A DNA stretch of 64,000 nt, taken from positions 117,242,001 through 117,306,000 of the forward strand of contig NC_091993.1 of the NCBI RefSeq assembly GCF_044704955.1, written 5' to 3'. Position numbers and translations under genes: made by a program. Below, one piece after another: positions 2,223 to 61,036 of this stretch. Within the stretch, counting starts at the first letter, position 1, and each line of letters begins with the position of its first letter. The DNA comes from Pristiophorus japonicus (taxonomy: Eukaryota). The notes under the pieces are model-generated. The model saw only the letters and a program-made list of their open reading frames with translations. It searched no databases and was not told where the DNA came from.

Positions 2223-2540
2223 CTAAAGTCTAGCGTTAGCATAAATTGACATTTCAGAGTTTTCCGGAGTATCAAATGATGGAGGTTCTCTGTTGTTCTT
2301 TGGGGGCTGGCCTTGAACCTTGATAGCACTGTAGGTGACACTGTCCTCATTGTTAACTGAGTGCCTGGCCACCTCACCGCTCCGTGCTGTCGATTTCTTC
2401 TGAAACTGCACTGTTGCATACGTGATTCCATTTTTGTCATTACTCAACTGGGCACTTCCCTCGCTGGGCCTTTCTGCTGAGCTATGTCGAAGGGGCTTTA
2501 CACTTGCATATACAGTGCTCCCTTCCGCTGCTGAAAATTG
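2223..2540 (-). CDS. Gene A exon 7, cytoplasmic tail with TVYASV, ITYATV, VTYSAI and SIYANA
   Basis: Acceptor T-tract plus tag at 2541-2543; in frame with ORF 2223..2447; four Tyr motifs. Confidence 0.9.
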   Translation of the reverse strand, partial: QFSAAEGSTVYASVKPLRHSSAERPSEGSAQLSNDKNGITYATVQFQKKSTARSGEVARHSVNNEDSVTYSAIKVQGQPPKNNREPPSFDTPENSEMSIYANARL

Positions 2541-5500
2541 CTAAAATAAAAAAAAATGAGATCCAATTTATCTCTGATTAACTTGAATGATGATTTGTGC
2601 TGTTATGAGGAGAAATGTATTTCTGGATTATTACAAATCAATTTACAAAGTATTAGAAAGTACGACAAATTATTTACAGCACAGAAACAGGCCATTCGGC
2701 CCAATGGGTCCATGTCAGTGTTTATGCTCCACATGAGCCTCCTTCCACTCCTCTTCATCTAACCCCATCAACATACCCCTCTATTCCTTTCTCCCCATGT
2801 GCTTATTTAACTTCCCCTTGAATGCATTTATGCTATTTGCCTCAACTACTCCCTGTGGTAGCGAGTTCCACATTCTGACCACTCTCTGGGTAAAGAAGTT
2901 CCTCCTGAATTCCCGATTGGATTTATTAGAGTCTTATATGTATGGCCCCTAGTTCTGGTCTCGCTCGCAAGTGGAAACATCTTCTCTATGTCTACCCTAT
3001 CCAACCCTTTTATAATCTTGAAGACCTCTATTAGGTCACCCCTCAGTTTTCTCTTTTCAGAAAAGAGCCCCAGCCTGTTCAATCTTTCCATAAATGTTTA
3101 ATTTTCCAAGAGAGTATAATAACACATTACATCTCATCATTTCATAGGTGAAGTAGCAGTGATCCTAAATCAATATTAACTACATCTATATTTACAACAA
3201 CAACAACTTGCTTTCATATAGCGCCTTCAACGTAGTAAAATATCCCATGGAGCTTCACAGGAGCATAATCAGTTAAAAATTGAAACCGAGCCAAAGAAGC
3301 AGACATTAGGGCAGTGACCAAAAACTTTTAAGTTTTTACGGCAGAAGAATTTTAAGGAGTGTCTTAAAGGAGGAGAGAGTAGCGGAGAGTTTTAAGGAGA
3401 GAATTCCAGAGCTTAGGACCTAGGTGTCTGAAGTCAAGTCTGCCAATAGTGGTGTTAAGGAAGTGGAGGATGCATAAGGCCGGAGTTGGAGGAACGCAGA
3501 GTTCTTGGAGAGTTGTAGGGCTGGAGGAGGTTAAGATGTTTAAATAATGCATGTGCAACATCCTGGCCCAAAATCCTAATTTTCAGTTTCACAATTTTTG
3601 AGTACGCTTTTGGGAATTCCCTGTTTACCACTGTCAACATTGGGTTGTCATGTTCCAGGCCTCATTTGACCAGAGCCCTGCTCTTGAAGTACCTTGACCA
3701 ATGCCAAGAGAAGGTCACTCGTTTAAAAATGTTTTAAAACTTTGGGGCTTCACCCTTATGGGTCACAAAGCTCTCAACAGTCGAGGTGCTGTTCTTGTTG
3801 TGTCACAAAGGGAAACAAAACTGAACGTTTAGCCCCCCCGTTTGGGATAGTGCAGCATGTCGTTTGTTTTGTGTGTTATGTGGAGCGCTACAGAAGACAT
3901 TCAAGTCTGGAAATGCTACATTGTTCAGCTATGTGCCGACATTGACTCTTCTGGGTGAAGAGGTCAATCAGTCCACATAGCAGAAGATTGGAGAAGCCCA
4001 AGTGAAGGATGACAACATGCAGTTCATAAACAAGGGATGGGTCTCACAGTTATGCTGTCATACATCTCGATACTGCAAAGTCAAATAAACTCCAAATTGT
4101 AAGATATGTGGTTCCACTTATGGGAGAGACCAGTGCTGCTGATATGAGACAATATCTATGGCAGGCCAGAAATTTGTAACCTCCTCACTGGTATAGAGCA
4201 GTCTTTGGTCATGGGGAGAGACAGGTGATGAAATTGAGATTCTTAAGATTATGAAGCTAATTAATAAAATTGACCCAGTCAAAATTTCACTGTGGCAAAA
4301 GGTTCAAATACTTGGGATGTCGAGTTGAAATTAATACGATAGCAAGTCAGGTCAAACTTTCGGTACTCAATGGCCCAGAAATCCCGGTCGGCTGCTTCCA
4401 GCAGGCGATCGAGGGAAAAACTTTAAAAAGATGCGCACTTACCTGAAGCTGCTGCGCCCACGCGGGTTCCCGGTCCTGAGGCCGCCACTGACTGCGCGTC
4501 GCAGCGCGTGCACGTCAGGACGTGTGCAGGGCTGGAACTGCAGTCACATGGCTCTGGGCAGCCAATCAAGGTGAAGTGTGTTCTCATTCATAATAATGGG
4601 AATTCCGTAAGTTGGAGTTCCCATTATTATGAATGAGAACCACGCCTCCCAAACACCCAAAACACTAATAAAAAATAGAAAAAACGCACCACATGTTTTT
4701 ATTAATTTAAATTAAAGTTATTAATGTATTATAAAAAATATATATTTTTCCAATTAAAAAAAACATTTTTTACATTATGGTTTAAAATAAACTTACTGTA
4801 GTGGGGAGGGTTTGTATAATTTTATTTTAAAATGTTTTTGTGTATTTTAAAACTCTTACACCTGTAAAAGTAGGCTATGTGCCTGCTTTTATCAGGCGCA
4901 AGGGTTTTCATGACATTTGCTGGGCAAGATATGGGAAAATACCCGCAATCTTGCCCGTGCGAATGTCCTGGCAGCCGAGATACGGAAGATCTGTCAAGCT
5001 CCAGCTTGACAGATCGGAAAAGCCGGTTTTCAGCGCATGCACATTGTGCGCTGAAAACCACACAATGCGCATGCACACTCCGTACGGACCCGGGAGGCCG
5101 GAATTTCTGGGCCAAAAGAGTTGTGGAAAATTTTACTAGGAAAGACTAGATGAATAGATTTAAGAGTCAATACGATGCATTTTGGAGCGGGAAAGCATTG
5201 TCAGATATAATAAAAAAGTGGGTAGGTAAGATCAACCTCAGAGAACAGCAGATGTGCTGGTTGGGCCTGGTGGCCTATTCCTGTTCTTAATTTTTTTTTG
5301 CATTAGTACTTGGGACTTTACACGACTATATGAAAATGTAGACTGAGAAAAGTCATCAAATCTGTAATGTATTTGCTTCATGGGCTCCCTGCTCACGAAT
5401 TCATAGCAACACTTTGCTACCAAGAACTAGTTGGTTTATCAACAAAGGTTTAATAATCACACTACACATTACCAGTTCATCCACTAGGCTCACAACAGCA

Positions 5501-8500
5501 TACCTCATTGTGGATGACTTAGACCCAACTGACTGGGGTTTTACTGAATTTTGTGAACATCACGTGACTGGCTAAGCCACTCACAATGCTCTACAAACCT
5601 GTGAGAATACTCATGGGTGCGTACATTACAAAATCCAAAGACCGGGTTAAACAATTAACAAAGTCGCATTTCTAACTGTAAGGCCAAGGTCACCATCCCT
5701 CTGTGCCCATGAGAGTGAAATAATGGAATGATATGCTGCTAGGGTTAGCTGAAGAGGGGTGGAAGGAGGCCTGTGTGGAGCATAAACGCTGACATGGCCA
5801 AATGGCCTGTTTTTGTGCTTTAAATTCTATGTAATCCAGTTTTGCAAATTTCCAAATATTATTCAGAGAATTCATACTTAATATCCTTACCTCATCATGA
5901 ATAAGAGTGCCGTCTCCTCTATGACATATTATGCAGTTTGTACCTGAAAAATTACAATGTTACTGTTGAAAGAGCTATAACAGGAACAATTAATATGTTT
6001 AAAATGTACAAACTGACAATGTGTTTCAGCGTGCATAGTCTTACATTGATCTACATTGATGTGAACCTCATCTGCATTGCACACATGATTCCCTACATAG
6101 AGCGAAAAACTGCTCTGGTTATTCTGCACAATATTCAGAAAGCACGGAGGTAACTTTCACCTTCACTGACTGACGCAGCAGATCATCTGCCTGTTGTAGA
6201 ACTCGCCCGATTATCACCCATTGAGTTCTACAAGGCGCTCTGCCAGATTATCGCCCAGACGTGAAGGTGAAAATTAGCTCCCACTATGTTCAGGTTTTTA
6301 CAAGACAAAGACTGATCAATTCTACCCTGCAAATGAGCTCCTGATCTGTTGTGCCATCAGTGGGAGGCCAAACAATTCATCACAGGGAGAAATCAGAGTC
6401 AGCCAGTGGCTGAGTTGCATTAGCGAGTGGCTCAGTGGGTAGCGCCCTCGCTAAGTCAAGAGGTCATGGGTTCAAGAGACTTGAGCGCAAAAATCTAGGC
6501 TGACACTCCTCATGAAGGAATGCTGCACTGTTGCAGGTGCCATCTTTCAGATGAGACATTAATCTGAGGCCCCGTCTGCTCTCTCAGGTGAAGGTAAAAG
6601 ATTCCATGGCACTATTTTGAAGAAGAGCAGGGGAGTTCGCCCCGGTGACCTGGCCAATATTTATTCCTCAACCAACATAACAAAAACAGATTATCTGGTC
6701 GTTATCACATTGCTGTTTGTGGGAGCTTGCTGTGCGCTTATTGGCTGCTATGTTTCCTACATAATAACAGTGAGTACACATCAACAAATAAGGACTTAAT
6801 TTGCTGTAAGGCGCTTTGAGGCATCTGATGGTCGTGAAAGGCGCTCTATAAATCTTTCTTTTTTCTATTGACACCAGCCAATGAGTTGGAGGTGGGGCAG
6901 GATTAGTTTATTTTGCAGCAAACAAAATTAATAAGAGAATAGTAATGCAAACAAAATATATTCACTCAGCAAAATCTATTTAAACAGTGCATTACAGCAA
7001 ACAATCTAGAGAGTCTATTTTAACAATGCATTACAGCAAACAGTTTACAGAGTCTATTTTAACAGTGCATTACAGCAAACAGTCCATAGAGTCTATTTAA
7101 ACAGCATTACAGCAAACAGTCTACAGAGTCTATTTTAACAGTGCATTACAGCAAACAGTCTACAGAGTCTATTTAAAAAGAGTCCCTGTGGACTAGAGGA
7201 ACAGAACTCCTGACCGAAACTACGGCCATTTCTCCTGATGATAACAGGATGATTTCTCCAGAAAAATGCAGTGAGAGAAGGGTAATTACATAATACAAAT
7301 TGATTATTCCTCCAGCAAAATGCAGATAGCTCCATGCAAATTCTGAGCATAAAATCAATCTCAGTCACTTAAAGCAGTGCAGTCTCCAGACGTGATTGAC
7401 GGGGAATTGCCCAATGATCTCCATGGCCGAGAATAGTGGTTTCACTATAAGCAACTGGGAGAATTCTTAGAGGTTGTCACCTCAGTGATCTCAGGTACAG
7501 CATTAGCAGCAGAAAACTGGTCCAACTTGTTGGTCCATGAGTAACATTTGTCTCAGAGAAGTACAGTTGTCTGTGGCAGCTCTTTGCTGGAGCAATCTAA
7601 AACTAATACTAATGTCTTTGCTCACTCTTCAATGCTCTGTATATATCACTGCTTTGTAAGAGTTTACACGTTTCGTAATCAAGCACAGCAAGAGATCGCG
7701 GACTGAAGTGGTTGAAAACAAAAACCTGTGGGACTGTTGGGTGGGAGAAAAAGTGCCAGCCTGGGGCAGGTGGTGACTCATAACTGATTAATGCAATTTC
7801 TGCGGCCAGGAGCGAGACCCGATTAACATCGAGACAAAGGGTTTTGATACAATCAAGCAGAGAAGCCCATGGATTCATTGGCCGGAGGGGAAAAACCAGT
7901 TCCCTATGGAGACTACAAGTCTGCGAAAATCTAGCACCACAAAGGATCCCACAAGGCGTGCATTTTTGGATAGCGAGGCATAAAAGATAAGGAGTTATCT
8001 TTGGTCCTGCTGATTCCGTGCACAGAACGAGGTGCAAATTGTGACCATCCAAGCAGATCCAAACCCATCATTACAGCCATCGAGGCTCATCCAGACACAT
8101 TAACTGAAAGCAGCCCAGCAGGAAACTTGTATCGAATGGATATATATGAAGGAGCTCACAGAAGCAAACCACCTCAGAACAACAGGTCAAAGGAACAACA
8201 ACCACGAAGGGGAACAATGGAAAGAAGAACAAGAAGAGAGAGATGACGAGAAGGAAACACACGCAGGAGTAGAGACAAGTGGAGAAGCAAGCAGCGGGGA
8301 CCCACCATCTTCCCTCGCTCCACGAGCCTACAATCACCAACAGTAGCAACTGGCTGGGCGGGTGTTTGTATGTCTTCGATCAATCTCTAAGAAGTCTTAT
8401 TCTGTAATTTTTAGTTGGTTTTTGTGTAATAAACTAACAGTTGGGTTTAAGACTAAACTTTGCGTTACGTGGAGTCCTTCCTGTAATTCCCGAGGTCTAT

Positions 8501-11500
8501 GAATCAAAGTAGAGTGGGAAACAAACACCCTACAGCTTCAAACCATGAGCCAATTTCCCTTTAAAAAGTCCAAGGGTCTTTACCACTCCCTATGACAAAG
8601 CATTCCATGTTCCAACACATCTCTGAATAAAGAAATATCTCCTAACCTCTCTCCTCACTCTCTTAGTAACAATTTTAAATTGAGAACCCCTTCATCACTG
8701 ACTCCCCAACCAGAGAAAATCGTTTTTCCCCATTCACTTGATCAGGACCGTTCATATCTTTGAAAAACTCTACTAGACCAGAAAATATGAGGCAATTTAG
8801 AAAAAATGAATAAAGTAAACAATTTGTTGTTAATGATACATAGTTTGTATATGCAATGGTGATTGTAAACTTGATTATCATGATAACATTAGGACCAGAT
8901 TTAATAAACCACCACTTTAAACTCCTGTCTCCAAATGAAAGATAGAGGATGGCTTCTACTGTACTCCAGTTGACCCTGTGTTCTAACTGAACATAACAAG
9001 ATGTGAAACATGGTCAAGTTGACTTTATTGCACCATCTGTGGTGAGGTGTAACAACTGTTTTCACAACTTCTTCCTCTCGAAGCTACAAGCTGCTTCAAG
9101 ATTAATTACTTCATATTTGCCATTGGCAGAAGGGTCGAGCACCAGAGGTCACAGATTTCAAGGTGATTGGCGGAAGAGCCAAAGGCAACGTGAGGGAAAA
9201 CTTGTTTACGCAGCGAGTGGTTAGGATCTGGAATGCACTGCCTGATGGGGTGGTGGAGGCAGACTCAATCACGGCTTTCAAAAGGGAATTGGATAATTAC
9301 TCGAAGGAAAAAACATTGTAGGGTTGGGGGAAGGGGTAGGGGAGTGGGATTAGCTGAGGTGCACCTGCAGAGAGCTGGCGCAGATTCGACGGGCCGAATG
9401 GCCTCCTTCTGTGCTGTAACCGTTCTATGATTCTATGTAAGAACAGTAACAATGGGTGAAAAATGAGAACATTGTGGATTTTATCGACTTTTATAAACTT
9501 CTTGCAGCATTGTCTCTGCTTTAGCTGGAATGCCCCAGCCAGCATATGTCATCTTTAGGGCTCAGCCTTTGGAATTTCCCATTTGAACTTAGTTTGGACG
9601 TCAAAGCCAAACACATCTTGATTCCCGCCATACAAAGCTTTCGCTTCAGATAATCAATCAAATTTCAACTGATGTTCTAATCCAAAATATCACGAGGAAA
9701 ATCTTTTCAGCTACCTTTTATTTGTATGCGAGCTCAAGGTGCTCTCAGCAAATACATGCTCGCGTGAATTTAAGGCAGTCATTAACCCACTTCATTCATG
9801 ACCGCCTTAAGTTATTGCTGACAGGAATTTGTTTTACATGTCTTATGTATTCATACTGAAAGACCACTAACTGACACATTTCCTGTCGTTTGACTAGGGG
9901 AAGCATTAAATGGTCAAAAAGAAGCCAGACACTATTAGATTTTACTGGTAAAGCAGCCAGTCCCACAGAGAATCTGCAATCTTTTTTTTCCTTCGGGTAA
10001 TTATCCAATTCCCTTTTGAAAGCCACGATTGAGTCTGCCTCCACCACCCCATCAGGCAGTGCATTCCAGATCCTAACCACTCGCTGCGTAAAAAAGTTTT
10101 CCCTTACGTCGCCTTTGGATCTTCTGCCAATCACCTTGAAATCAGTGACCTCTGGTTCTTGACCCTTCTGCTTGAGTAAACAGTAACCATTCCAAAATTG
10201 GTCATCTGACTCCCGAACTCATTCTCTTAAACGTCTTGGATTTGATCGCAACTTAGCACAATTGGGTCATAAGAACATAAGAAATAGGAGCAGGAGTAGG
10301 TCATTTGGCCCCTCGAGCCTGCTCCGCCATTTAATAAAATCATGGCTGATCTGATCATGGATTCAGCTCCACTTCCCTGCCCGCTCCCCATAACCCTTTA
10401 TTTCCCTTATCGCTCAAAAATCTGTCTATCTCCGCCTTAAATATATTAAATGACCCAGCCTCCACAGGCAGAGAATTCCACAGATTTACAACCCTCTGAG
10501 AGAAGAAATTCCCCATCACAGTTTTAAATGGGCGACCCCTTATTCTGAGACGATGTCCCCCAGTTTTAGTTTCCCTTATGAATGGAAATATCCTCTCTGC
10601 ATCCACCTTGTCGAGCCCCCTCATTATCTTATATGTTTCGATAAGATCACCTCTCATCCTTCTGAACTCCAATGTATATAGGCCAAAACTACTCAACCTA
10701 TCATCATAAGTCAAACTCCTCATCTCTGGAATCAATCTAGTGAACCTTCTCTGAACAGCCTCCAATGCGAGTATTCCTTAAATACGGAGCCCAAAACTGT
10801 ACGCAGTACTCTACATGTGGTCTCGCCAATATCCTGCACAGTTGTAGTCTGCTTTTATATTCTATCCCTCTTGCAATAAAGACCAATGTTCCATTTGCCT
10901 TCCTGATTACTTGCTTGTCGAATCAGAGAAATTTAGCTGATGAAGAACATACATGAGAAATAGGAGCAGGAGAAGGACATTTGGCCTCTCTAGCCTGCTC
11001 CTTCATTTAACAAGATCATGGCTGATCTGATCACATTCAATTACAACAAACACATCGCAACTGCTCACGCTTATCGTTGAAAGACCAAGGCCCATCTAAA
11101 TTTCACTTCCACCGAAACATCTCTATCTTTCTAAACCCATGATGGATTCTGCTTCCTGCAGAGCTCAGAGGAATATTTGCTGTTACCTAGCAAAAGTAAC
11201 AACTTACCTACTATTCTTCCATGTTTTATACATCTAGACTAGAAAATGCAATATACTACAATTGTAGCTGTTTGTTGATTGCAACGAGCCATGTTCTCTT
11301 TATACAAAAGAAGGGTCATCGACCTGTAACACTAACTCTGTCTCTTTTTCCACAGATGCTGCCTGATCTGCTGAGTATTTTCAGCATTCTCTGTTTTTAT
11401 GTCCTCTTTATATTCTGCTGCAAATTATTGACATATAATGAAATTATTGAAGAAAGATAGGAACTCACCCTTCTTGTTGAGCATCAGGTAGAAAAGTAGG

Positions 11501-14500
11501 CAAACAGCAAACACAACAATAAGGGCTCCCAGCACACTGAGCACAATGTAAACCAGGCTGTGGTACAGAGAAGAGGAAAGGGTCAGCGTTGGTTCTCAAT
11601 TGGTCCTTGGCTATTTTCTTTTAAAGAAAAACTTGCATTTCTATAGCGCCTTTTACAGCCTGGGGACATCCCAAAGCGCTTTGCAGGCATGAAGTACTTT
11701 TGAATGTACTGCCGTAATGTGGGAAACGAGGCAGCCAATTTGCGCACAGCAAGCTCCCACAAACAGCAATGTGATAATGAATAGATAATCTGTTTTTTAC
11801 TGGTATTGGTTAAGGAATAAATATTGGCCATGCCTCTAGGGAGAACTCACTGCTCTTCTTCAAATATTGCCATGGGATCTGTTACAGCCACCTGACAGGG
11901 CAGATGGACCCTTGATTTAATGTCACATTTAAAAAAAATTTGTTCCTGAGATGTGGGCATCGCTGGCATGGCCAGCATTTATTGCTCATCCCTAATTGCC
12001 CTCGAGGAGGTGGTGGTGAGCTGCCTTCTTGAACTGCTGCAATCCGTGAGGTGAAGGTATTCCCACAGTGCTGGTGGGAGCGAGTTCCAGGACTTTGACC
12101 CAGCGACGATAAAGTAACGGCAATATATTTCCAAGTCAGGGTGGTGTGTGACTTGCAGGGGAACTCGGAGGCGATGGTGTTCCCACGCGCCTGCTGCCCT
12201 TGTCCTTCCAGGTGATGGAGGTCACGGGTTTGGGAAGTGCTGCCGAAGAAGACCTGAAAGACGGCACCTCCGACAGTGCAGCACTCACTCAGTACTGCAC
12301 TGGAACGTCATCCTAGATATTGCGCTCAAGTCTCTGGACTGGGACGTGAACCACAACCTTCTGACTTCGAAGGTGAAAACAACAAAAGAATACCTGGTGA
12401 TACCTGACAATATAGAAGCAACAACAGTTTGATGCACTATCTGGATTTTATAGTCAGATGATCTTCATAGTCAAATTTATATAACAACAGATACAGGGAT
12501 ATATCCTAAAATAAAATGCAAAGATTTTCAATATTTGTTACATGATTAACATTTATCTGGCATATGCAGGAAATCTGAAAGAAAAACAGAAGTTTCTGGA
12601 AACACTCAGCAGGTCAGTCGGCAGCTGTGCGATATCTTTAGAATCTGGTGTGAACTAGAATTCTGAGGAAGTGTCTGCACCTGAACCATAAATGTGTCTG
12701 TTTTCTCCACAGACCGGTCTTGTGTTTCCAGCAGTCACTACTTTAGTTTGACATTTAGTTGGTGTTTTCTCCTTATTCCCATTGCAACTTCAAAGACCCA
12801 ATTCCTTAGTGTTCACATTGAACTACAATTTCTGCTGCTTGTTGCCTACATCTCGGGCTAATAATACGGAAATCCATTACATTAATTGAGTATTTACATC
12901 CCAAGCACATTGGGTGAAATATATAGCCACAGAATAGGAATTGGAGAAAACCTCCTCCAAGCCCTGACTTAAAACGGCATCACTAAACACAAGTCCCTGC
13001 CATCAACATCCTAGGGGTCACTGTTGACCAGAAGCTTAACTGGACCAGCCACGCCAACATTATGGCTACAACAGCAGGCAAGAAGCTGGGTGCTCTGCAA
13101 CGAGTGGCTCACCCTCTGATCACTCCGAGCCTCTCCATCATCTGCAGTGCTCAAGCCTGGAGTGTGATGGGAGTACTCACCTTGGATGGGTGCAGCTGTA
13201 ATAACACTGAGGTTCACCACTATTTAAGACAAAGCAGTGCATATGATCAGTGCCCCTGCTGCTGAGCTCAATATCCATCCCCTCCACCACTGGCGCATGG
13301 TGGCTACAGTACATACCATCTACAGGACACACTGCAGCAACACCCACATCCTGAGAATCTATTAAATCAACTTGCCCAGCTTAACTTAAAATCACCTCTG
13401 AGCCCAATGGTCTGTACCATCAAGGCAAGCAACGTCATGCGAACACCATCTCCCTTAAGTTACACACGGTTCTGGCCAGGACACCGGGATAACTCTCTTG
13501 CTCTTCTTTGAAATAATGCAATGGGATTTTTTACGTCAGCAGATGGGACCATGATTTAATGCCTCATCCAAAAGACAGCTCCTCCAACAGTGCAGTGATC
13601 CCTCAGTGCTGCACTGGAGTGTCAGTCTAGAATTTTGTGCTCAAGTCTTGGGCGTGGGACCTGAATCAGAGGTGAGAGTGCTAATCTCTGAGACACAATC
13701 GACAAAATTGGTAAATTGGTTGAGGCTTTGAAGAAGTACAAGAGCTTCTGAGCCTTATGCGAGTAATGCACAACAGCTGAGTTACTTTGAGGCTTGAGCT
13801 AGATTTACGTCTTGCATATGAAATCTGGCAGCTACATTAAAATACACTGTGAATAGAATTCCTTACCAAATACAACAAATTGTTTGGCCACCATTTTAAG
13901 TGAGCTAAGCCTGCCCTAATGTAAAATAAACATGTGCCCATCAGCAGCATTTTGAGGTGTTGGCAGCATAATTCACTCTGTAACTTATTAATCAATTCGA
14001 GAAATTGGCAGAGCAGAACAATTAATTAAATTAATATTTATTTTTATGACTTGTAAAACATAAGAATCTTGAGTGTCATAACATCAAAAGACTACATTGG
14101 GGAGGGGAAAATGCTGTTTCTTTATTGTTGCTAGGTCAAAATCATGGAATTTCTTACTTAACACCATTGATCAGCAGATCAAGAAGGTGGACCAGCATCA
14201 CCTTCTCAGAGCAACTAGTGACAGGCAATAAATGTGATCTTGTCAGCATTGCCCACCTCCCTAGAACAAATTTTAAGAGAAGAAACTTCCTGCAGTTGTA
14301 GTGAGCGACACTGAGAATTGGACCAAAGCTGAAGATGTTGCTCACTGGTGATATCAAGGGCTGTGCAGATATATTGCTGCTATTGCTCACTTTCACCAAC
14401 AGAAACTTTACTGTCAGCCCCACACCAGAACAGATATCGGCAAGGTAAGTTTGATAAGTGCAACTCATCATACACCATGAGAGTAGGTTAGTGGTGAAGT

Positions 14501-17500
14501 AATCATGGTGAATAATGCAAAGAGCACCGTCTGAGGGGCGGCAAAATGGAGGTTCCCAATACTCATTCTTATTTCCTACCAACAAAGACAGCACCTTCAT
14601 TAGGAGCTAACACAGCAGCATGTGTAAACCCAGCCACCATTCCAAAATAATAAATGATTATCATCCCTTATGTCAAAATGATTAAAGAATATTTAATCTC
14701 TCAGGTGGAAGCAATGTCGGTCAAAACATCAGTAATGAGAACATTGTACCTTTTCGGCGCTTTGGATCTTGAAGATGGTTTTCGTTTATCACTGGAAATT
14801 ATATTTGTACTTGTTGGTGATACTGTTGTAAAAACTTCACAAGAATATTCAGGTCCTATTGAAACAAGGGAACAAAATTCAGATTCACCTCATTTTTACT
14901 TGTAGTCAACCAAGAGAGCACGATTGTCAAATGGAACCTCACTATTTGAGTAAAAGCCTGGTTGACATAATGGATTTGGATAATTTAATTTCTGTGTAAT
15001 TTTCCCCTCTCTGGTAGCAAGGGGAGATGCTGCTGACATCTGGCCATGGCCCATTGTTACTGATAATTTTTGTTTTTTTCCCGTATCTGAGAATTGGTGG
15101 TACAGAGTTATTATTGTGGCAGACAGCCATGGCTCAGTGGGTAGCACCCTTCCCTCTGAGTCAGAAAGTTGTGGGTTCAAATCCCACTCCAGAGGCTTGA
15201 GCACAAAAATCGCGGCTGACACTCCAGTGCAGTGCTGAGGGAATGCTGCACTGTTGGATGTGCTGCCTTTCAGATGAGACATTAAACCAATGCCTTGCTG
15301 CTCTCTCAGGTGGACATAAAAGACCCCATGGCACTAAAATTATTATAACATTGCTGTTTGTGGGAGCTTGCTGTGAGAAAATTGGCTGCTGCGTTACTGC
15401 CATTACAACAGTGAATACACTTAAAAAAATGTTCTTAATTGGCTCTAAGGTTCTTTGGGACATCCAGTGGTCGTGAAGGGTGCTATATAAATGCAAGTCT
15501 TTGTTTTTAAAGGGCTCAGGATGGTGGACTACAAAGCAGGTATGCCCATTTATGCCCCATGCATACGTATGGGAAAGTCCCAGCCAGAGAGCCAGCCTCA
15601 GCCACCGGATAATGTATTTCTGGGGGCCAAGCAAGCATAATTCTGTCCCGGAGAGTGTCCTCAGTGGCAAAGTCGCAGCAGCAGTGTGTAAAGGAATGTC
15701 ACATGAATACATTAAACAGTCGCCTGCCAATATTGGTAATGGTCATTTCCTGCCTCCAGGGACTGGTTTTCTGAGCTTGCAGTGGAGACAGAATGCTGGC
15801 GGAGAGGCCCCCCATCACCACTGAGCATTCAGATAATTGGCTCTGGTCAGTTGTAAGTAAATAATTTGTTTCGAAATGTAAGAAATAACTCGCATTGGTA
15901 CGGTACCTTTCACTTTCTCAGGATGTTCCAAAGTGCTAAACGGCCAATGAAGTACTTTGTTGAAGTGTAGGAGTGTAGGTTGTAATGCAGGGAAATGCAG
16001 AAGCTAATTTGCACACAGCAATGTCCCACAAACAGCAATAAGATAAATCACCAGATAATCTGATTCTTGGTGATGTTGGTTGAAGGATGAACGCTACTAG
16101 GACATCTGGAGAACTTCCCTATCCTTCTTTCACTAGTGCTATGGGATCTTTTGCATCTACCTGAGGGGGCAGATAGGTCCTCAACATCAAGTCCCGCCTA
16201 GAGAACAGCATCTCCAACAGTGAAGCACTAGCTCAGTGCTGGGACAGTGGTTTCTGCCTGAATTATATTTATGGAACATGCCTTGAACCCACAATCTACC
16301 TGTATCAGAGGCAAGAGTGCTACTAATTGAGCCACTACTGACACGTACAGCACAAATGCAGTTTACAGGTGAGATTTCGACCTGCTGCTGACATCCTTCT
16401 TCTCTGACCGCTAAAGCAAGTGAACACATTAGTATATGGCCAGAGTCAATATTTGCATTTGTTAATTTATATGAATAATTGCTTAGGAGAAAATGCATTT
16501 ATTTCTATTTTCTGACCGTTTTGTTGTTTCTCAGCGCAGCCACTGGTGAACATATTGCTTCCCGCTCTGCGAACAATTAAACCGCTACATTTGAATAGGC
16601 TAAAGTCCTCCTTAATTCAGTACCATGGTCATGGTTTTACAGTGAGTGAGTAATTCCGTTTTTAGCTATTGAGGGATCCAAATGGAGTGAATTTGGCCAG
16701 TTGCAGTTGCTCAGTGACTGAAGGAACTTAACCAGCGACCAGTTAAGAAACATAGCAACATAGAAAATAGTTGCAGGAGTAGGCCATTCGGCCCTTCGAG
16801 CCTGCACCACCATTCAATAAGATCGTGGCTGATCATTCACCTCAGTACCCCTTTCCCACTTTCTCTCCATACCCCTTGATCCTTTTAGCCGCAAGGGCCA
16901 TATCTAACTCCTTTTTGAATATATCTAATGAACTGGCATCAACAACTTTTTGCGGTAGGGAATTCCACAGGTTAACAACTCTCTGAGTGAAGAAGTTTCT
17001 CCTCATCTCAGTCCTAAATGGCTTACCCCTGATCCTTAGATTATGTCCCCTGGTTCTGGACTTCCCCAACATCGGGAACATTCTTCCTGCATCTAACCTG
17101 TCCAGTCCCTTCAGAATTTTATATGTTTCTATGAGCTCCCCTTTCATCCTTCTAAACTCCAGTGAATACAGGGCCAGTCGATCCAGTCTCTCCTCATATG
17201 TCAGTCCTGCCATCCCGGGAATCAGTCTGGTGAACCTTCGCTGCACTCCCTCAATAGCAAGAACATCCTTCCTCAGATTAGGAGACCAAAACTGAATACA
17301 GTATTCCAGGTGAGGCCTCATTAAGACCCTGTACAATTGCAGTAAGACCTCCCTGATCCTATACTCAAATCCCCTAGCTATGAAGGCCAACATACCATTT
17401 GCCTTCTTCACCGCCTGCTGTACCTACATGCCAACTTTCAATGACTGATGTTCCATGACACCCAGGTCTCGTTGCACCTCTCCTTTTCCTAATCTGCCTC

Positions 17501-20500: not shown

Positions 20501-23500
20501 TTCCATGAGCCTTCATTTGAAAATGTGTTTCCTGACGTTACCCTCAAGATGCGCTTCAGTTGCCTGGACAGATCTGGAGGTGCCCTTCAGTGCTCACCAG
20601 CCTGGGCCTACAGAATGATGGTGGTTTGCTGCGCTCTGCACAACACTGCGCAGCAGCGAGATTGGAGCTGCAGGAGGGACAAGGAGCTGAGCACACGTTG
20701 TCTGCGGACCATTCCGAGACAGAGGAGGAAGATAAGAGGAAAAGGAGCAGGAAGAGGAGGAGGGGATTGCGACCCTAACGAAGCACCAGTCACTCACATT
20801 GTTGCCCGCGATGCCAGCGTTTCCCTTATAGCTGTAAGGTTCAGTCTGTTACCAGCACTGGGCTGATGTAACAACCACATCCAATGCTGCTCTCAATTGC
20901 CTATCTCCTACCCTGCCCCCCCCCCGCACCCACCCCCGCACCAATCCCACTGACACAAAGCAGACCTGCTACCCACCAACCACCCATTGCTCCCCATCAA
21001 TTCATGTCTTCCCATTCATTACCGAGCAACTGAAAAGGCCAGTTGCCACCCAGCAACCAAAAATGGGGAGGGAAAGTGATGCAAAGTAATATATTTTATG
21101 TAATTCTGCCAAAGAACAGAAAATTAACAACATAACAATTACTCAAACACACACGTGGATACACTTCTGCAATTACACAGCTTTACTCTGCCTTTTCCGA
21201 CCGCTCCTATGTGGTGCAACATTTATGACTTCAGCAGAGGTAGAGGTAGGCTGCTCAGATCCCTGCTCTGACTGTTGAGAAGCACTTGGTCGATGACCTC
21301 TGGGTTTGTAGCCCATGAGGGCTCAGCCAAAGTCTGCTCCACCCGCAGTAGATTTGATAAGACAGGGTGAGGGGGTGGTTTATATGTACAATGGGTAGTA
21401 GGTGAATGAGCAGCTGTACTCACCTTTCCTAAACTGGTTTGGTCATTAAAGAGCTTCTTGGTGTTAGCAGCAGTAGCGTTGTGAAAGTGGGGCGCAGGCT
21501 TTGAGCGTCGTGAGTCTATCTTCTACGATTGCTGTCTATGTTCCCAACCTCCCAACTCCTAGAATTCCATCTTTGGATTGGTCCTTTAAATACTTGAGTT
21601 AAGATTACATCATGCATGTCTGCACCACTCCCACTACCGCACATACGATGCAAAACCCGGGAGTAAATTATTATCGGCCGGCTGCGTAAAAATGCCACAG
21701 ACAGACGCACTGTCCAGAACCAGGGGACACAGTCTTAGGATAAGGGGTAGGCCATTTAGGACTGAGATGAGGAGAAACTTCTTCACTCAGAGAGTTGTTA
21801 ACTTGCGGAACTCCCTACCACAGAGAGTTGTTGATGCCAGTTCATTGGATATATTCAAGAGGGAGTTAGATATGGCCCTTACGGCTAAGGGGATCAAGGG
21901 GTATGGAGAGAAAGCAGGAAAGGGTACTGAGGGAATGATCAGCCATGATCTTACTGAATGGTGGTGCAGGCTCGAAGGGCTGAATGGCCTACACTTGCAC
22001 CTATTTTCTATGTTTCTATGTAATTACTTCCGGGTTTCCCAGGCGATATTGGATCCCCTGCACCGAACATGTCTCGAAGTTAATATCCAGACCATTGCAT
22101 CTTATAGTTGATCCATCAGGAGGTTATGCTGGGGAGAAAGATAATGTCTCAGCATTTAATAAAGAGGCTTCTTTTACCATCAAAACAGTGACCAGCTTTT
22201 CAATTTTCTTTTATATTGTTTGTAAAGTTGACCAATTAACTCATTGATAATGTGAGCCATCCATCATATCAGGAAACCTACAAAATTTGTTCAGCTCTGT
22301 GGATTGCAGGTATTTTTTATTCATTTCAAAGAATTTATACCATTAGTAACGACTTGCTGCTCACTGCTTTTGTTATTGTCTGACTATTAGTTTCAGTCTG
22401 AAGGCAAACCTCTGACAGTGGGACATTTAATACAGCTCAGAGACAGGGACATGTGGTGAGCCTCCTAGGTGATGTCTGGCACAACACCCTGTAGTTAAAG
22501 GAATTGTTGGTCCCATAATACTTGAAATTCCTGGTCGGGAAGTTGGGCAGGCCACGGATTGGGAGTGTGCACCATGAGTCGGATTTCCCCACCTCTGCCC
22601 ACTACCTGTGAGACTCTGCACTGCTGCGGAGCCTCGGGATATCGGAGCTCTCATGTTTCCTCCCAGATACAACATTGATCAGACAGTTCAGCAGAGAGTA
22701 ATAAAGCACATCGCTGAGAAACGTACCGTCAGATATTTGTAGCTTTACAGAAAACCTTGTATCAATGCCAGATTGTGAAATACCACAGCTGTACCGTCCT
22801 TCATCTTCTGAGCGAAGGTCCTTCATCGTAACAACAAATATTCCTGCTGTCTGGTTATCTGTGATTGACACTCTTCCTTGCCGTCCATTTGGGTCATTTG
22901 ATTTTACTAAATATGTACAACTGATAGTTGTTCCATCACACCAATATTTCACATGTGACCGGTACCCATGGTCATAGTGACATTCTATGGAGATCGCTCT
23001 TCCCACAATTCCTCTTACTTTATTTTTTGCCCACAATGCACCTGAAACTGAGGAGACAACATTTCAGAAATTGAACAGGAAATAACTGCTCAATACAAAC
23101 AGCTCCATTTTAATAAGTGTTACCACACTGTACAGAGGAATCTCTCCACTACATCAATTAATACAGTTGAGTTCCTTCTAATTTGTGATGAAAGAAAACA
23201 TTAATGCAGTGCCTGATCACATTCTCAGGATGTGCCAAAGCACTTCACAGCCAACGATTAACTTTTGAAGTACAGTCACTGTTGTTAATGTGCCAGATGT
23301 GGTTCAGTGTTCGCACTTTCGGCTCCAAGTCAGTAGATTGTGTATTCAAGTTCCAGCCCAGGGACCCGAGCATAAAATCTCGGCTGACATTCCACTGTTG
23401 GAGGTGCTGTCTTTCAGATGAGATATTATACTGAGACAGGGTCGGTCCTGTCAGGTTGTTGTAAAAGTTCCCATGGTACTATTTTGAAGAAGAGCAGGGG

Positions 23501-36866: not shown

Positions 36867-36874
36867 ATTGTTCT

Positions 36875-38812: not shown

Positions 38813-38860
38813 TCACTTTACCACATTGGTCAAGCTGTGACGAACCGATTCATTGAGTAA
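38813..38860 (-). CDS. Probable gene B terminal exon LLNESVRHSLTNVVK*
   Basis: Acceptor ttttctttttcag, phase 0 as required, TGA at 38815-38813, AATAAA ~100 nt downstream (38709-38714). An alternative weaker acceptor exists at ~39350. Confidence 0.55.
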   Translation of the reverse strand, partial: LLNESVRHSLTNVVK

Positions 38861-41800: not shown

Positions 41801-44800
41801 ATTTTCTCGTACACCTTGTGACTGAAATAGTACAAATCACCAGGAGAGCAAAGAGCAGCCAGCGTCCCACATTCCATATAATGTAACTGAGCAAAAGGGA
41901 ACAAATACAAAATCATTCGAAGCAAACGAGTCTGCTTTGTGTTTGAAACATTTATCATCTGTTTACACTGTAATCTTAGTATAGTGCATCAATGTAAAGC
42001 TGCAGAGCCAAGGGACGTTAACTGGGAAAGTAAACTAGTGTTTACGTTATGGAGGAAAGTCAACCTTGTGATCATTAGATAAAGATCAAATGAAGCAAAC
42101 TTCATTAACATGTGCACAATGTATAGCTGCAATGGTAAGCCACAATTTTATAATTGAGGACTTTATAAAAGTGACTGGCCAGCTGAGGGAAGCATCGCTG
42201 CCTGGGGCCATGTAGCAATGGTGAGATATCTCCTCAGGGAGTAAGGATAGTCAGAGTAGCATCACCCTACACTGCTCTTATGCACCTTCTAACAGGCAAT
42301 TGCTGAATAGCTGGAATCAGATATCCTTCCTACCCTCTCAGTTTGGGAACTGTGTCTCACGTCGGGGAACTGAGAAGGGGAAAAAGACAACTTTTTTGTC
42401 AGTACCAGAACAGATAAGGGGCAAGGAAAACTGACATTGCGGTTCTTTGGTAAGTGCAACTCCATGAGATTATGTTAACGGTGAAGTAATCAAGTTGAAT
42501 AATGAAAAAAGCCCCATCTAAGTAGCAGCAAAATGGAAGTGCTTACTTGTTATTCTTATTTTCCAGCAACAAAGACAGCACCTTGGTTAGGAAGCTAACA
42601 CAACATGATGTCAACTCAGTCACCATTCCCATTCTGAGGAGCTACATTCCAAAATAATACATGATTATCAACCCTTATGACAAAACTATTAAAGAATATT
42701 TAATCTCTCACATGGAAGCAATGCTAATCAGAACACCAGCGATGAGAACATTGTACCTTTTCGTCAATTTGGATCCTGAAGAATGGTTTCGATTATCAGT
42801 GGAAATTATATTTGTATTTGTGGAATGTGCAGTTGTTGGTGATACTATTGAAACACCTTCACAAGAATATTCAGGTCCTTTTGAAACAAGGGAACAAAAT
42901 TCAGATTCATCTAATTTTCACTAGTAGTCAACCAAGAGAGCACGATTGTCAAACGGAACCTCAATACTTGGCTGCTAGAAATTAAATTATCCAAATCTAT
43001 GCTGTGTAATTGCCCTTCTCTGGCAGCAAGGAGAGATGTTGCTGTCACCTGACCATGGCCCATATTACTGATAATATACTATTGGGACAGTTAAAGGGCT
43101 CAGGTTGGTGCGATTACAAACCAGGTATCCCCGCGCAAGTGTAAAGGAAAGTTCTAGCCAGAGAGTCGGTCTCTGCCACCACCAGAAAATGTATTCTGTG
43201 GTCCGAGCAAGTGCAATTGTGTCCTGGAAAGTGTCCTCAGTGGAAAAGGAATGTCAGCTGTGCATTGAGTGCAGAGGGAAATATTAGACCAGGAATTACT
43301 GCTGTCAATATTAGTGGACAAGCAGATACATTTCAGATGGCATTTCATTGTCAAAAGATTGTTTCTGTTAAATTAATCAGCAGATGAATGTCACACAAAC
43401 ACATTGAACAGACGCCTGCTAATATTGGCCATGGTCATTTCCTGCCTCTTGGGCTGGGTTTTCTGAGCTTGCGGTAGTAACAGCAAACGACACACACCAT
43501 GCAGGGGATCTCGCATATCAGGGACTGGCTCACAATCACAATAGATCATCGTCCGCCATTTCTGCCACCTCCAGCATGATCCCACCACCAAACGCATCTT
43601 CCCCTCCCCTCCCAACATTCCGAAGCTGGCGCACCCTCCGCGACACCCTTGTCCGCTCCACAAACACCCCCAGCACCCCCTCCCCTTCCCACGACACCTT
43701 CCTGTGCAAGCACAAGAGATGCAACACCTGCCCTTTTACCTCCTCCCTTCCCACTTTCCAAGGCCCAAAATACTCCTTCCAGGTGAATCAGCGGGTTACT
43801 TGTACTTATTTCAATTTAGTATCTTGCATTCGTTGATCACGATGTGGTCTCCGCTACATTGGGGAGACCTAACGCAGATTGGGTGACTGCTTTGCAAAAC
43901 ATCTCCATTCAGTCCGTAAGTGTGACCCTACGCTTCCTGTCGCCTGTCATTTCAACTCTCCGCTCCACTCCACTCCAACTGGGATCTCTCAGTCCTCGGT
44001 CTCCTAGACTGTTCCAATGGAGCTCAACGCAAGCTCGAGGTACAGCTTCTCATCTTTTGTATAGGCACTTTACAGTCATCAGGACTCAACATCAAGTTTA
44101 ATAATTTCAGATCATAATCTCTGACCATATATTTTCCCTTTTTTTAAAAAGCATTCCTTTCTCTCTCCTTCCCATGGCAGCTGGTGATGATTCTGCCATT
44201 CATATCCCATTTAGTTGTTGCTTAACTTGTTCCATTACCATCTCAGTTTTGCCCATCATCCCTTTAGTCTCTTTAATCTCTCCTGCCTTCCACCCTATCA
44301 CAGACCTTCCCTTTTGTTCTTTCCTCCCCTCCCCCTTTCACTGCCACTGCACGTCTTTAAGAATTTGTTACATCTAAAACTTTTCCAGGTCTGATGAAGG
44401 GTCACAGACCCGAAAAGTGAACTCTGTTTCTCTCCACAGATGCTGCTTGACCTACTGAGATTTCCAGTATTTTCTGTTCATATTTCTGGCTCACAAACGG
44501 TTTGGATCGACATTCATTGAAAAATTAATGTTGTTTGTTCAAAGTAACACATACCAATGCCACTGATTTGTGTCACATAACTGCAGTGCTTCCCTGCTCT
44601 GTTGAAGACTGTCACATCGACCGTTTCACTGGATTTCTCTCCCTGATTATTTGAGGCTGTGCAGTAATATTGATGATGTTGCTGTTTGAAGGATTGACAA
44701 TGTAGATCCAGTTTATTGGTGTCGGAGATCTTTGAATCTTTAATCGGGGTCTGTTCATACCATGTGTACTGAATGGGAAGGGATCCCTGGACAGACTCAC

Positions 44801-47800: not shown

Positions 47801-48650
47801 GGTCTCCAGTCGTCCTCATTCAACACTTGCCACTTGATAAAGGCCTAGCTCTGGCAAGCCCGTCTGGTGGTTGATGTGCAACGGTCACTACACGTTAAAA
47901 AAATTCACGCACAGACATCTTCCACCCCCTCAATTGGAGTTCAGGACTGGAACATTGGGTCTTTCATTGAATCATCTGTGATGATGATTAGTTTCAGTCT
48001 GAAGGCAAACCTCTGACAGTGGGACATTTAATACAGCTCAGAGACAGGGACATGTGGTGTGCCTCCAGGTGATGTCTGGCACAACACTCTGTAGTTAAAG
48101 GAATTGTTGGTCCCATAATAATTGAAATTCCTGGTCGGGAAGTTGGGCAGGCCACGGATTGGGAGTGTGCACCGTGAGTCGGATTTCCCCACCTCTGCCC
48201 ACTACCTGTGAGACTCTGCACTGCTGCGGAGCCTCGGGATATCGGAGCTCTCATGTTTCCTCCCAGATACAACATTGATCAGACAGTTCAGTAGAGAGTA
48301 ATAAAGCAAATCGCTGAGAAATGTACCGTGAGATATTTGTAGCTCCATATTGAAATGTGTATCGAAGCTGCCTGATTCTGTAATACCACAACTGTACCAT
48401 CCTGCATCTGCTGAGCGAAGGTCCTTCATCGTAACAACAAATATTCCTGCTATCTGGTTATTTGTGATTGACACTCTTCCTCCCCATCCATGTTTCTCAT
48501 TTGTTGTTACTACAACTGAGCATTGGTGAGTCCAGCCCTGACACCAATATTTCACATGTGACCGGTACCTTTGGTCATAGTGACATTCTATGGTGATCGC
48601 TCTTCCCACAATTCCTCTTAGTCGTTTATTTGCCCACAATGCACCTGAAA
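38813..48650 (-). CDS. Gene B: activating-type paralog (V-C2-stalk-TM(Arg)-short tail). Exons 48650-48327, 44878-44555, 42877-42757, 41886-41796, probable last exon 38860-38813; leader exon not found
   Basis: All identified exons are open, with GT-AG sites and consistent phases. It would be 314 aa with an A-type leader. It may be a 5'-truncated pseudogene. Confidence 0.72.
39403..40265 (-). mobile_element. CR1 3' fragment
   Basis: LYRALVRPHLEFCVQF...TRGHNLKI. Confidence 0.85.
40335..41079. mobile_element. MITE of the same family as 4371-5114, opposite orientation
   Basis: Perfect TIR TGGCCCTGAAATTCCG; internal similarity to 4371-5114. Confidence 0.78.
41796..41886 (-). CDS. Gene B transmembrane exon SYIIWNVGRWLLFALLVICTISVTRCTRKSK with intramembrane Arg
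   Basis: Strong acceptor ttgttcccttttgctcag, donor AAG|GTAGGG; the phase-2 start matches the stalk; Arg codon at 41862-41864. Confidence 0.85.
42757..42877 (-). CDS. Gene B stalk exon GPEYSCEGVSIVSPTTAHSTNTNIISTDNRNHSSGSKLTK
   Basis: Paralog of 14750-14855 with an in-frame 15-nt insertion; acceptor aag, donor AG|GTACAA. Confidence 0.82.
43541..44485 (+). mobile_element. Penelope-like element fragment (GIY-YIG endonuclease and 3' end)
   Basis: CKHKRCNTC..FTC...NLVSCI..C.L.YIGET.RRL....H...PVACHFN pattern with stops; a reverse fragment lies at ~57830-58230. Confidence 0.8.
44555..44878 (-). CDS. Gene B C2-domain exon
   Basis: 9 aa differences from gene A exon 3; acceptor tttcccacag, donor G|GTATGT. 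Confidence 0.9.
45555..46920 (+). mobile_element. Harbinger remnants in gene B intron (paralog of 20530-21700)
   Basis: Same transposase C-terminal fragment; the middle portion differs from A. Confidence 0.7.
47613..47987. mobile_element. Gene B-specific ~370-bp retroposon-like insertion
   Basis: Absent at A ~22390; flanked by a duplicated t(a/t)agtttca; family not identified with certainty. Confidence 0.55.
48327..48650 (-). CDS. Gene B V-domain exon (CD300/pIgR-type)
   Basis: IECHY..KYWCQGWTHQC..GRVSIT..DAGWYSCG; same splice positions as gene A. Confidence 0.92.
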
Positions 48651-56724: not shown

Positions 56725-56866
56725 GGGAGAGAGAGGGAGCATGTGAGAGGGAGAGAGAGCGAGTGAGAGGGGGAGAGAGTGTGTGAGAGTGAGAGAGTGT
56801 GTGACAGAGGGAGAGAGTGTGTGTGAGAGAGAGAGAGAGAGTGTGTGACAGAGGGAGAGAGTGTGT
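56725..56866. repeat. Compound (GA)/(GT) microsatellite
   Basis: Directly visible. Confidence 0.9.
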
Positions 56867-58805: not shown

Positions 58806-61036
58806 CTAACATCTAGCGTTAGCATAAATTGCCATTTCAGAGTCCTGTGGAGTATCAGGTGATGGAGGGTCTCTGTTGTTCGTTGGGGGATAGGTTTGAA
58901 CCTTGATAGCACTGTAGGTGACACTGTCCTTGTTGTTAACTGAGTGCCTGGCCACCTCACCGCTCCGTGCTGTTGATTGCTTTTGAAACTCCACTCTTGC
59001 ATACGTGATTCCATTTTCATCGTTACTCAATTGGGCAGTTCCCTCGTTGGGCATTTCTGCTGAGCTATGTCGAAGGGGCTTTAGACTTGCATATACAGTG
59101 CTCCCTTCCGCTGCTGAAAATTGCTAAAATAAAAAAAAATACAAGATCCAATTTATCTCTGATTAACTTGAATGGTGGTTTGTGCTGTTATGAGGTAAAA
59201 TGTATTTCTAGATTATTACAAATCAGTTTACAAAGTATTACAAAGTACGACAAATTATTTACAGCACAGAAACAGGCCATTCGGCCCAATGGGTCCATGT
59301 CGGTGTTTATGCTCCACACGAGCCTCCTTCCACCCCTCTTCATCTAACCCCATCAACATACCCTCTATTCCTTTCTCCCCATGTGCTTATTTAGCTTCCT
59401 CTTGAATGCATTTATGCTATTTGCCTCAACTACTCCCTGTGGTAGCGAGTTCCACATTCTGACCACTCTCTGGGTCAAGAAGTTCCTCCTGAATTCCCGA
59501 TTGGATTTATTACTGTCTTATATGTATGACCCCTAGTTCTGGTCTCGCTCGCAAGTGGAAACATCTTCTCTATGTCTACCCTATCCAACCCTTCTATAAT
59601 CTTGAAGACCTCTGTCAGGTCACCCCTCAGTTTTATCTTTTCAGAAAAGAACCCCAGCCTGTTCAATCTTTCCATAAATGTTTAATTTTCCAAGAGAGTA
59701 TAATAACACATTACATATCATAGAAACATAGAAACATAGAAAATAGGTGCAGGAGTTGGCCATTCGGACCTTCGAGCCTGCACCACCATTCAATATGATT
59801 ATGGCTGATCATGCAACTTCAGTACCCCATTCCTGCTTTCTCTCCATACCCCTTGATCCCTTTGGCCGGAAAGGGCCACATCTAACTCCCTTTTGAATAT
59901 ATCTAATGAACTGGCCTCAACAACTTTTTGTAGTAGAGAATTCCACAGGTTCACAATTCTCTGAGTGAAGACGTTTCTCCTCATCTCAGTCCTAAATGGC
60001 TTATCCCTTATCCTTAGACTGTGACCCCGGTTCTGGACTTCCCCAACATCGGGAACATTCTTCCTGCATCTAACCTGTTGAATCCCGTCAGAATTTTATA
60101 TGTTTCTATGAGATCCCCTCTCATGCTTCTAAATTCCAGTGAATATAAGCCTAGTCGATCCAATCTTTCATATATCAGTCCTGCCATCCTGGGAATCTGT
60201 CTGGTGAACCTTCGCTGCACTCCCTCAAAAGCAAGAATGTCCTTCCTCAGATTAGGAGACCAAAACTATACACAATATTCAAGGTGTGGCCTCACCAAGG
60301 CCCTGTACAACTGCAGTAAGACCTCCTTGCTCCTATTCTCAAATCCTCTTGCTATGAAGGCCTTTTGCCTTCTTCACCGCCTGCTGTACGTGCATGCCAA
60401 CTTTCAATGACTGATATACCATGACACCCAGGTCTCGTTGCACCTCCCCTTTTCCTAATCTGTCACCATTCAGATAATATTCATCATCTCATGGGTCAAG
60501 TAGCAGTGATCCTAAATAAATATTAACTACATCTATATTTACAACAACAACAACTTGCTTTCATAGAGTGCCTTCAATGTAGTAAAATGTCCCATGGAGC
60601 GTTACAGGAGCATAATCAGTTAAAAATTGAAACCGAGCCAAATAAGGAGACATCAGGGCAGTTGGCCAAAAACTTCTAAGGTTTTAAGGCAAAATATTTT
60701 AAGGAGCGTCGTAAAGAAGGAGATAGCAGCGGAGAGGTTTAAGAACGAAAATTCCAGAGCTTAGGGCCTAGATGTCTGAAGTCAAGTCCGCCAATGGTGG
60801 TGTTAAGGAAGTGGAGGATGCATAAGGCCGGAGTGGGAGGAACGCAGAGTTCTTGGAAAGTTGTCGGGCTGGAGGAGGTTAAAAGGTTAAAATAATGCAT
60901 GTGCACATCCTGGCCCAAAATCCTAATTTTCAGTTTCATAATTTCCAAACATTATTCAGAGGATTCATACTTAATACCCTTACCTGATTATCATGAAGAG
61001 TTTTGTCTCCTCTATTACATATTATGCAGTTTGTAT
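58806..61036 (-). CDS. Gene C (partial): inhibitory paralog of gene A. Exons 61036-60984 (DTNCIICNRGDKTLHDNQ) and 59123-58806 (tail with TVYASL, ITYARV, VTYSAI, AIYANA); upstream exons lie beyond the window
   Basis: Same exon lengths (53 and 318 nt), splice sites and flanking intron repeats as gene A exons 6-7; both exons are open. Confidence 0.85.
59718..60482 (-). mobile_element. CR1 3' fragment specific to gene C intron
   Basis: CR1 motifs; absent at the paralogous site in A (~3135). Confidence 0.88.

Follow-up and report, generated by a model that had tools for sequence, protein, structure and literature searches.

Predicted inhibitory and activating MDIR-type receptor genes in a 64-kb window of the sawshark Pristiophorus japonicus

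Three tandem receptor genes and their exons

A stretch of 64,000 nucleotides from the sawshark Pristiophorus japonicus (RefSeq assembly GCF_044704955.1, contig NC_091993.1, positions 117,242,001 to 117,306,000), here called the window and numbered from its first letter, carries three genes, A, B and C, which lie in tandem on the minus strand and which we assign to the MDIR family (modular domain immune-type receptors). Very probably, A represents a complete gene of the inhibitory type, B a gene of the activating type for which the window holds no leader exon, and C the 3' end of a second inhibitory gene. We are equally confident that the window is part of a large MDIR gene cluster. Every element that the original prediction, made from this DNA alone, had attributed to three tandem paralogs was recovered on the minus strand, at or adjoining the position proposed for it.

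The exons listed in Table 1 were located by tblastn guided by family proteins, after which the splice sites were read directly; single exons or database proteins, rather than a joined spliced model, served as queries in the searches. All internal junctions listed show an AG acceptor after a pyrimidine tract, a GT donor and phases that fit those of the neighbouring exons. Pfam identified V-set domains in the minus-strand open reading frames (ORFs) 22602-23036 and 48202-48639 (for E values see the V exons in Table 1) and gave weaker Ig_2/Ig_3 matches, below the cut-offs of these models, in the ORFs 19498-19890 and 44514-44918. A phmmer search with the V exon of A against 1.84 billion representative sequences yielded 988 matches at E<=1e-10. 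When the window was compared with itself, the segment 19503-23315 was found to be 88-95% identical to 44531-48900, which spans V and C2 in both A and B, and 2060-8783 to be about 90% identical to 58627-63161, which spans the 3' parts of A and C. In addition, tblastn of 264 collected family proteins against the 64 kb gave matches that were confined to the tabulated exon sites, from which we conclude that the window holds no further hidden family exon. Taken together, the V-set E values of about 2e-11, the 988 library matches, the exon-restricted tblastn matches and the self-similarity place the predicted exon assignments far beyond chance.

Gene A consists of seven exons with a total of 1248 nt, i.e. 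415 codons and a stop, in agreement with the 415-residue model that had been proposed, and it possesses the uncharged transmembrane (TM) segment and the four-Tyr tail that had been ascribed to it. The C2 domain matched FCRL5 in the PDB with an E value of 5e-42, summed over the domains of that protein, and FCRL4 as well; the stalk is rich in Ser, Thr and Pro, and the TM exon contains the top hydrophobic segment of the hydropathy scan. In the tail, ITYATV and VTYSAI fit the consensus [ILVS]xYxx[ILV] of the immunoreceptor tyrosine-based inhibitory motif (ITIM), which gives two canonical ITIMs, TVYASV fits the pattern TxYxx[VI] of the immunoreceptor tyrosine-based switch motif, and SIYANA is a YxN motif. 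Poly(A) signals (AATAAA/ATTAAA) are found 395 and 483 nt after the stop.

As had been described, gene B combines V, C2 and stalk exons with an Arg-bearing TM exon and a short, Tyr-free tail, and each of its five exons has an open frame, canonical splice sites and a phase that suits its neighbours. The likeness of its ectodomain to that of A is uneven, with 92% amino acid identity in C2 and only 69% in V; the indel that distinguishes the two V exons is in frame. The Arg sits in the outer third of the TM segment, and the TM exon is 66-78% identical to the TM of skate MDIR5 and of the collected proteins P0076, P0119, P0101, P0022 and P0154. In length and stop position the terminal exon equals the tails of Heptranchias P0154 (LLNESDHHRSANVAR) and catshark P0076 (PLNDCSSHSFSNVGK), and an AATAAA signal lies 101 nt downstream of the stop.

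Gene C is represented by its juxtamembrane and tail exons. The former, aligned together with its flanks to the corresponding region of A, shows a mean column identity of 93% over 143 columns. The tail retains all four Tyr residues (ITYA[TR]V and VTYSAI are seen across the tails of A and C) and has diverged from that of A with 0.096 nonsynonymous (dN) and 0.125 synonymous (dS) substitutions per site. The TM of C had been placed outside the window, and indeed no TM exon was found up to position 64000. The similarity of C to the 3' flank of A stops about 180 bp past the stop codon. With ITIM-bearing tails on A and C and a conserved Arg-TM with a Tyr-free tail on B, the three genes would conform to the paired inhibitory/activating layout that had been suggested for them.

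Table 1. Predicted exons of genes A, B and C (window coordinates)
Gene	Exon	Coordinates	Strand	Remarks
A	Leader	25045..25081	-	MWILILLMCSLP; phase-1 donor G|GTGAGT; located by pattern search; like the leaders of MDIR2, P0176 and P0101
A	V	22727..23047	-	CD300/pIgR-type V with second Cys pair (KYWC...C); Pfam V-set E 2.5e-11
A	C2	19527..19850	-	FCRL-like; PDB match FCRL5
A	Stalk	14750..14855	-	PEYSCEVFTTVSPTSTNIISSDKRKPSSRSKAPK; tblastn with P0073 and P0176; splice sites; phase 1 to 2
A	TM	11469..11557	-	Uncharged, LVYIVLSVLGALIVVFAVCLLFYLMLNKK; hydropathy score 3.13; tblastn with P0073 and MDIR2
A	Juxtamembrane	5891..5943	-	TNCIICHRGDGTLIHDE; aligned to counterpart in C; phase 1 to 0
A	Tail and stop	2223..2540	-	Four Tyr motifs; tblastn with P0073, E 7e-33
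B	V	48327..48650	-	69% amino acid identity to V of A; Pfam V-set E 1.7e-11
B	C2	44555..44878	-	9 of 107 residues differ from A
B	Stalk	42757..42877	-	Five codons longer than stalk of A
B	TM	41796..41886	-	Arg-bearing, YIIWNVGRWLLFALLVICTISVTRCTRKSK (YIIWNVGRWLLFALLVICTISV...); phase-0 donor
B	Terminal	38813..38860	-	Acceptor TTTTCTTTTTCAG; encodes LLNESVRHSLTNVVK, then stop; 15 residues, Tyr-free
C	Juxtamembrane	60984..61036	-	TNCIICNRGDKTLHDNQ; aligned to exon of A
C	Tail	58806..59123	-	Four Tyr motifs as in A

A pair of cysteines is conserved across the C2-stalk junction of A (19527-19580 and 14830-14855) as well as of B (44555-44610 and 42850-42877). The motif, ..HCSYVTQISGIG / PEYSCE.., is also found in MDIR2, MDIR5 and the shark models, and the two residues may close a small loop or link two chains by a disulfide.

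The genes are surrounded by repeats. The intron between the C2 and stalk exons of A measures 4.7 kb, compared with 1.7 kb in B, because a long interspersed nuclear element with endonuclease and reverse-transcriptase ORFs (16746-19455, minus strand) is inserted there; at least six further occurrences of the 3' part of this element are present in the window. Between A and B, on the plus strand, lies a Ty3/gypsy-type long terminal repeat retrotransposon (26764-31475), whose ORFs contain reverse-transcriptase, RNase H and integrase domains and whose flanking repeats (26764-27010 and 31230-31475) are 94% identical. The GC-rich, low-complexity region 53400-54280 contains, on either strand and in more than one frame, long ORFs rich in Gly, Arg and Glu and is probably a simple repeat and not coding.

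Relationship to MDIRs and to other receptor families

The original description of the skate MDIRs is reportedly that of Cannon et al. in 2006. Skate MDIRs form a multigene family of activating and inhibitory receptors that resemble CD300, TREM, FCAR and pIgR (PMC3031540). The named matches of the phmmer search were RefSeq models from sharks and rays, namely Heptranchias perlo, Scyliorhinus canicula, Rhinoraja longicauda, Mustelus asterias, Hemitrygon akajei, Hypanus sabinus, Amblyraja radiata, Leucoraja erinacea, Narcine bancroftii, Hemiscyllium ocellatum and Mobula birostris. The labels of these models vary and include 'polymeric immunoglobulin receptor-like', 'CMRF35-like molecule', 'Fc receptor-like' and 'uncharacterized'. 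Among elasmobranchs, at least 15 species have homologues, and so does Callorhinchus, in which full-length relatives are present.

Searches with P0076 retrieved MDIR5 (E 5e-139) and MDIR2 (E 1e-71) of the clearnose skate, Rostroraja eglanteria, and searches with P0073 retrieved MDIR3, MDIR5 and MDIR2 at E values from 4e-185 to 5e-101. In tblastn of MDIR2 and MDIR5 onto the window exons, identities amounted to 56-61% for V, 56-64% for C2 and 58-68% for the TM. Skate MDIRs had been named as the closest family, and the strong full-length matches to MDIR2, MDIR3 and MDIR5 bear this out. Homology searches of the kind that had been put forward as a check identified the family as MDIR, so that it is not a new one. 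The notion of a lineage-specific, possibly uncharacterised system is not supported, since the genes fall into the MDIR family, which is machine-annotated across sharks, rays and Callorhinchus.

The window genes share with the MDIRs not only the full-length similarity to named MDIR proteins but also the ectodomain modules, i.e. a V domain of the CD300/pIgR type and a C2 domain of the FCRL type, which across the family occur in variable number. In addition, both kinds of signalling cassette are present, ITIM tails in A and C (with ITIM-type Tyr residues in MDIR2) and an Arg-TM in B (as in MDIR5), and the genes belong to a large multigene family, with three genes in the window and the homologues in sharks, rays and Callorhinchus mentioned above. 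Judged by these sequence features, the window genes are predicted members of the MDIR family that would work like CD300-type paired receptors.

Among individual relatives, MDIR2 (P0198, 416 aa) has the architecture of A at nearly equal length, with leader, V, C2, a stalk with the Cys pair, a TM free of charge and an ITIM tail with several Tyr residues. Its V shares 61% of residues with that of A, its C2 56% and its TM 58%, but its tail only about 30%. As it originates from a ray and not from a shark, MDIR2 is considered to belong to the family without being a one-to-one orthologue of A; moreover, it is known from a protein record, without a genomic context like that of A. The best single-V-domain match was XP_067863712.1 from Heptranchias perlo (P0073, 418 aa, 'uncharacterized protein'), with 66% identity to the V of A, and in tblastn P0073 matches every exon of A, including the four-Tyr tail (59%). 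It differs from A in being a machine-predicted protein from another shark order, and an isoform of its gene has an extra V-C2 module.

For gene B, the same cassette is found in MDIR5 of Rostroraja eglanteria (P0160, 501 aa), as seen from the Arg-TM SYISWKVGRWLLFLLLVIW compared with SYIIWNVGRWLLFALLVIC in B, and in the single-module Arg-TM models XP_038676045.1 from Scyliorhinus canicula (P0076), P0176, P0184 and P0119. Like B, MDIR5 and these models end in a short Tyr-free tail. MDIR5 has, however, two V-C2 modules where B has one, and both MDIR5 and the single-module models have a leader, whereas B has none in the window.

It is very improbable that the window genes are orthologues of mammalian CD300, pIgR or FCRL and do not belong to a separate family. 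Such an orthology might be read from the PDB matches of the V domain, which comprise D1 and D5 of pIgR, CD300f (2.7e-19, the best single-domain match to the V of A), CD300a (2.4e-13), NKp44 and TREM, from the FCRL5 match of the C2 domain, and from the RefSeq names 'pIgR-like', 'CMRF35-like' and 'Fc receptor-like'; these names, however, are automatic and mutually inconsistent. CD300 receptors do share the V type with a second, extra disulfide, in line with which the V domain here has four Cys in the pattern ECHY...KYWC...C...YSCG, and their ITIM members (CD300a/f) stand beside charged-TM members (CD300b/c/e), the activating ones having Lys or Glu in the TM. Their ectodomain is nevertheless a single V-type domain without C2, whereas A and B each have V and C2 exons, and the identity is low. 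Similarly, pIgR consists of tandem V-like domains only, while the window genes have one V followed by C2, and FCRL proteins consist of C2-type domains only, while the N-terminal domain here is a V-set and only the C2 is FCRL5-like. To our knowledge, a V domain joined to a C2 domain is seen in none of these families, which is why we do not count the window genes among them. Furthermore, matches outside the cartilaginous fish, those in bony fish likewise, did not extend beyond the V domain; they covered 23-33% of the query, with identities of 35-42%.

Conserved cassettes and reshuffled ectodomains

The Arg-TM motif [YF]xxWxVxRWxxFxLLxI, whose fixed positions are W4, V6, R8, W9, F12, L14, L15 and I17, occurs in 26 of the collected proteins, from sharks as well as rays, and B fits it exactly. 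From this distribution, the Arg-TM cassette is judged to be ancient. The ectodomains of the family have the form (V-C2)n, with n from 1 to 3, on both types of cassette.

Trees for each domain had been proposed; a tree was built for the V domain with 59 sequences. In this tree the domains group by lineage (rays versus sharks and chimaera), A and B are sisters (support 89/95), and the labels activating and inhibitory are intermixed: the label needs 15 changes, compared with a mean of 16.9 for shuffled labels, i.e. it does not cluster.

Compared with each other, A and B form a mosaic. The C2 exons differ by about 4% (dN 0.037, dS 0.073) and the V-C2 intron by 1-4%, while the V exons differ by 17% (dN 0.207, dS 0.137) and the 150 bp upstream of V by 13%. 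Along 22665-23261 versus 48265-48860, the difference is 9-18% over the V exon and then falls sharply to 1-2% in the following intron. In the stalk region the identity is no more than 78%, and the two genes have unrelated TM and tail cassettes. Positive selection on V was not significant (dN/dS 1.5, Fisher p = 0.37), and since dS is raised too, the divergence at synonymous sites in V being several times that of the neighbouring intron, the data do not support positive selection alone. The pattern rather suggests that recombination or gene conversion has left a breakpoint at the 3' end of the V exon, together with relaxed or diversifying selection on V. Overall, the signalling cassettes appear as the old component of these genes, and the putative ligand-binding modules as the component that is reshuffled within each lineage.

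The 5' end of gene B and the function of the locus

From what is established for ITIM-bearing and charged-TM receptors, a mechanism can be proposed in which binding of a ligand by the V domain would lead to receptor clustering. In A and C, phosphorylated ITIMs would then recruit SH2 phosphatases, resulting in inhibition, whereas in B the TM Arg may pair with an Asp-bearing adaptor of the FcR-gamma/DAP12 kind that carries an immunoreceptor tyrosine-based activation motif, resulting in activation. The evidence for this pairing lies in the conserved Arg motif. What we say on expression, on the ligand, on the pairing with an adaptor and on the functionality of B goes beyond what the sequence itself shows and is inferred.

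Two observations weigh against this reading. One is that the V domains of A and B are only 69% identical, so that a common ligand, as in classical paired receptors, may be lacking. The other is that, as the original prediction had already cautioned, neither a leader exon nor a plausible signal peptide was found for B in 48651-58800, the 10 kb between its V exon and the tail of C. In detail, a fuzzy leader-pattern search of the whole window returned the leader of A as the sole match, sensitive blastn of 23300-25600 in A against 48651-58800 detected repeats only, and two scans upstream of B for an ATG with a hydrophobic core and a phase-1 donor, relaxed criteria included, produced nothing credible. 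The ORF 51991-52314 on the minus strand, which resembles the start of the paralogue model P0210, was rejected as an alternative first exon, as it has no donor of usable phase and is not a signal peptide. P0210 ('CMRF35-like molecule 8') is the sole model from the same species that was seen, and a 213-aa protein of Pristiophorus japonicus is a 92% paralogue. On the minus strand upstream of B, the sequence 52192-52260 (EENMAAGTLNVIGVLDMELVAA) matches the N-terminus of P0210, which is likewise not a signal peptide; this public model probably starts in repeat-derived sequence.

In our view, the odds are about even that B works and has a 5' exon of unrecognised sequence. Besides its open exons, its canonical splice sites with correct phases and the in-frame V indel, B retains all eight fixed positions of the TM motif that is common to sharks and rays, and its terminal exon has kept length, stop position and poly(A) signal. 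All of this speaks against B being a leaderless, non-functional copy, either recently disabled or formed when a rearrangement stranded a V-C2 module and an activating 3' cassette without promoter and signal peptide. Such a copy is nonetheless a real possibility, although we would not bet on it. The similarity between A and B ends 250 bp upstream of the V exon, with no homologue of the leader region of A beyond, the relaxed scans gave no acceptable signal-peptide exon, and the dN/dS of 1.5 in V fits a relaxed constraint. The non-signal start of P0210 also suggests that annotators likewise found no leader there. If B were non-functional, only inhibitory genes would work in the window.

The missing leader would also be accounted for if C and B formed one transcription unit from the promoter of C, in which the inhibitory cassette of C is either used or skipped, with the C2 of C spliced to the V of B. 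We consider this unlikely. No AATAAA or ATTAAA was found within the 1.6 kb after the stop of C (57200-58805, minus strand), whereas A and B have such signals; the scan covered these two signals, so that a non-canonical one may serve C. Phase 1 is common to the C2 donor and the V acceptor, two-module activating proteins exist (MDIR5, P0154 and P0157), and Heptranchias isoforms from one gene differ by one whole V-C2 module. An inhibitory stalk/TM/tail cassette within an intron of an activating gene has, however, no known precedent, and the 5' exons of C fall outside the window. The product of such a unit, with a similarly low probability, might be a four-domain V-C2-V-C2 activating receptor like MDIR5 when the cassette is skipped and a two-domain inhibitory receptor otherwise. 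A single gene would then toggle between opposite signalling outputs by the choice of its 3' cassette, and there would be an ongoing exchange of V-C2 modules between two ancient cassettes, one activating and one inhibitory.

Whichever reading of the 5' end of B applies, no new kind of receptor system is revealed here, as the genes are further members of the known MDIR family. What the locus offers is a fully resolved genomic example in which predicted inhibitory and activating MDIR genes are neighbours in a shark, documented by the coordinates and phases of their exons and by a map of the breakpoint. It may be of use for annotating repeat-laden MDIR loci, which are inconsistently named in RefSeq, and for picking constructs for adaptor and ligand experiments. 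For the family as a whole, it shows that the Arg-TM cassette has been conserved between sharks and rays while the V-C2 modules are reshuffled in each lineage.

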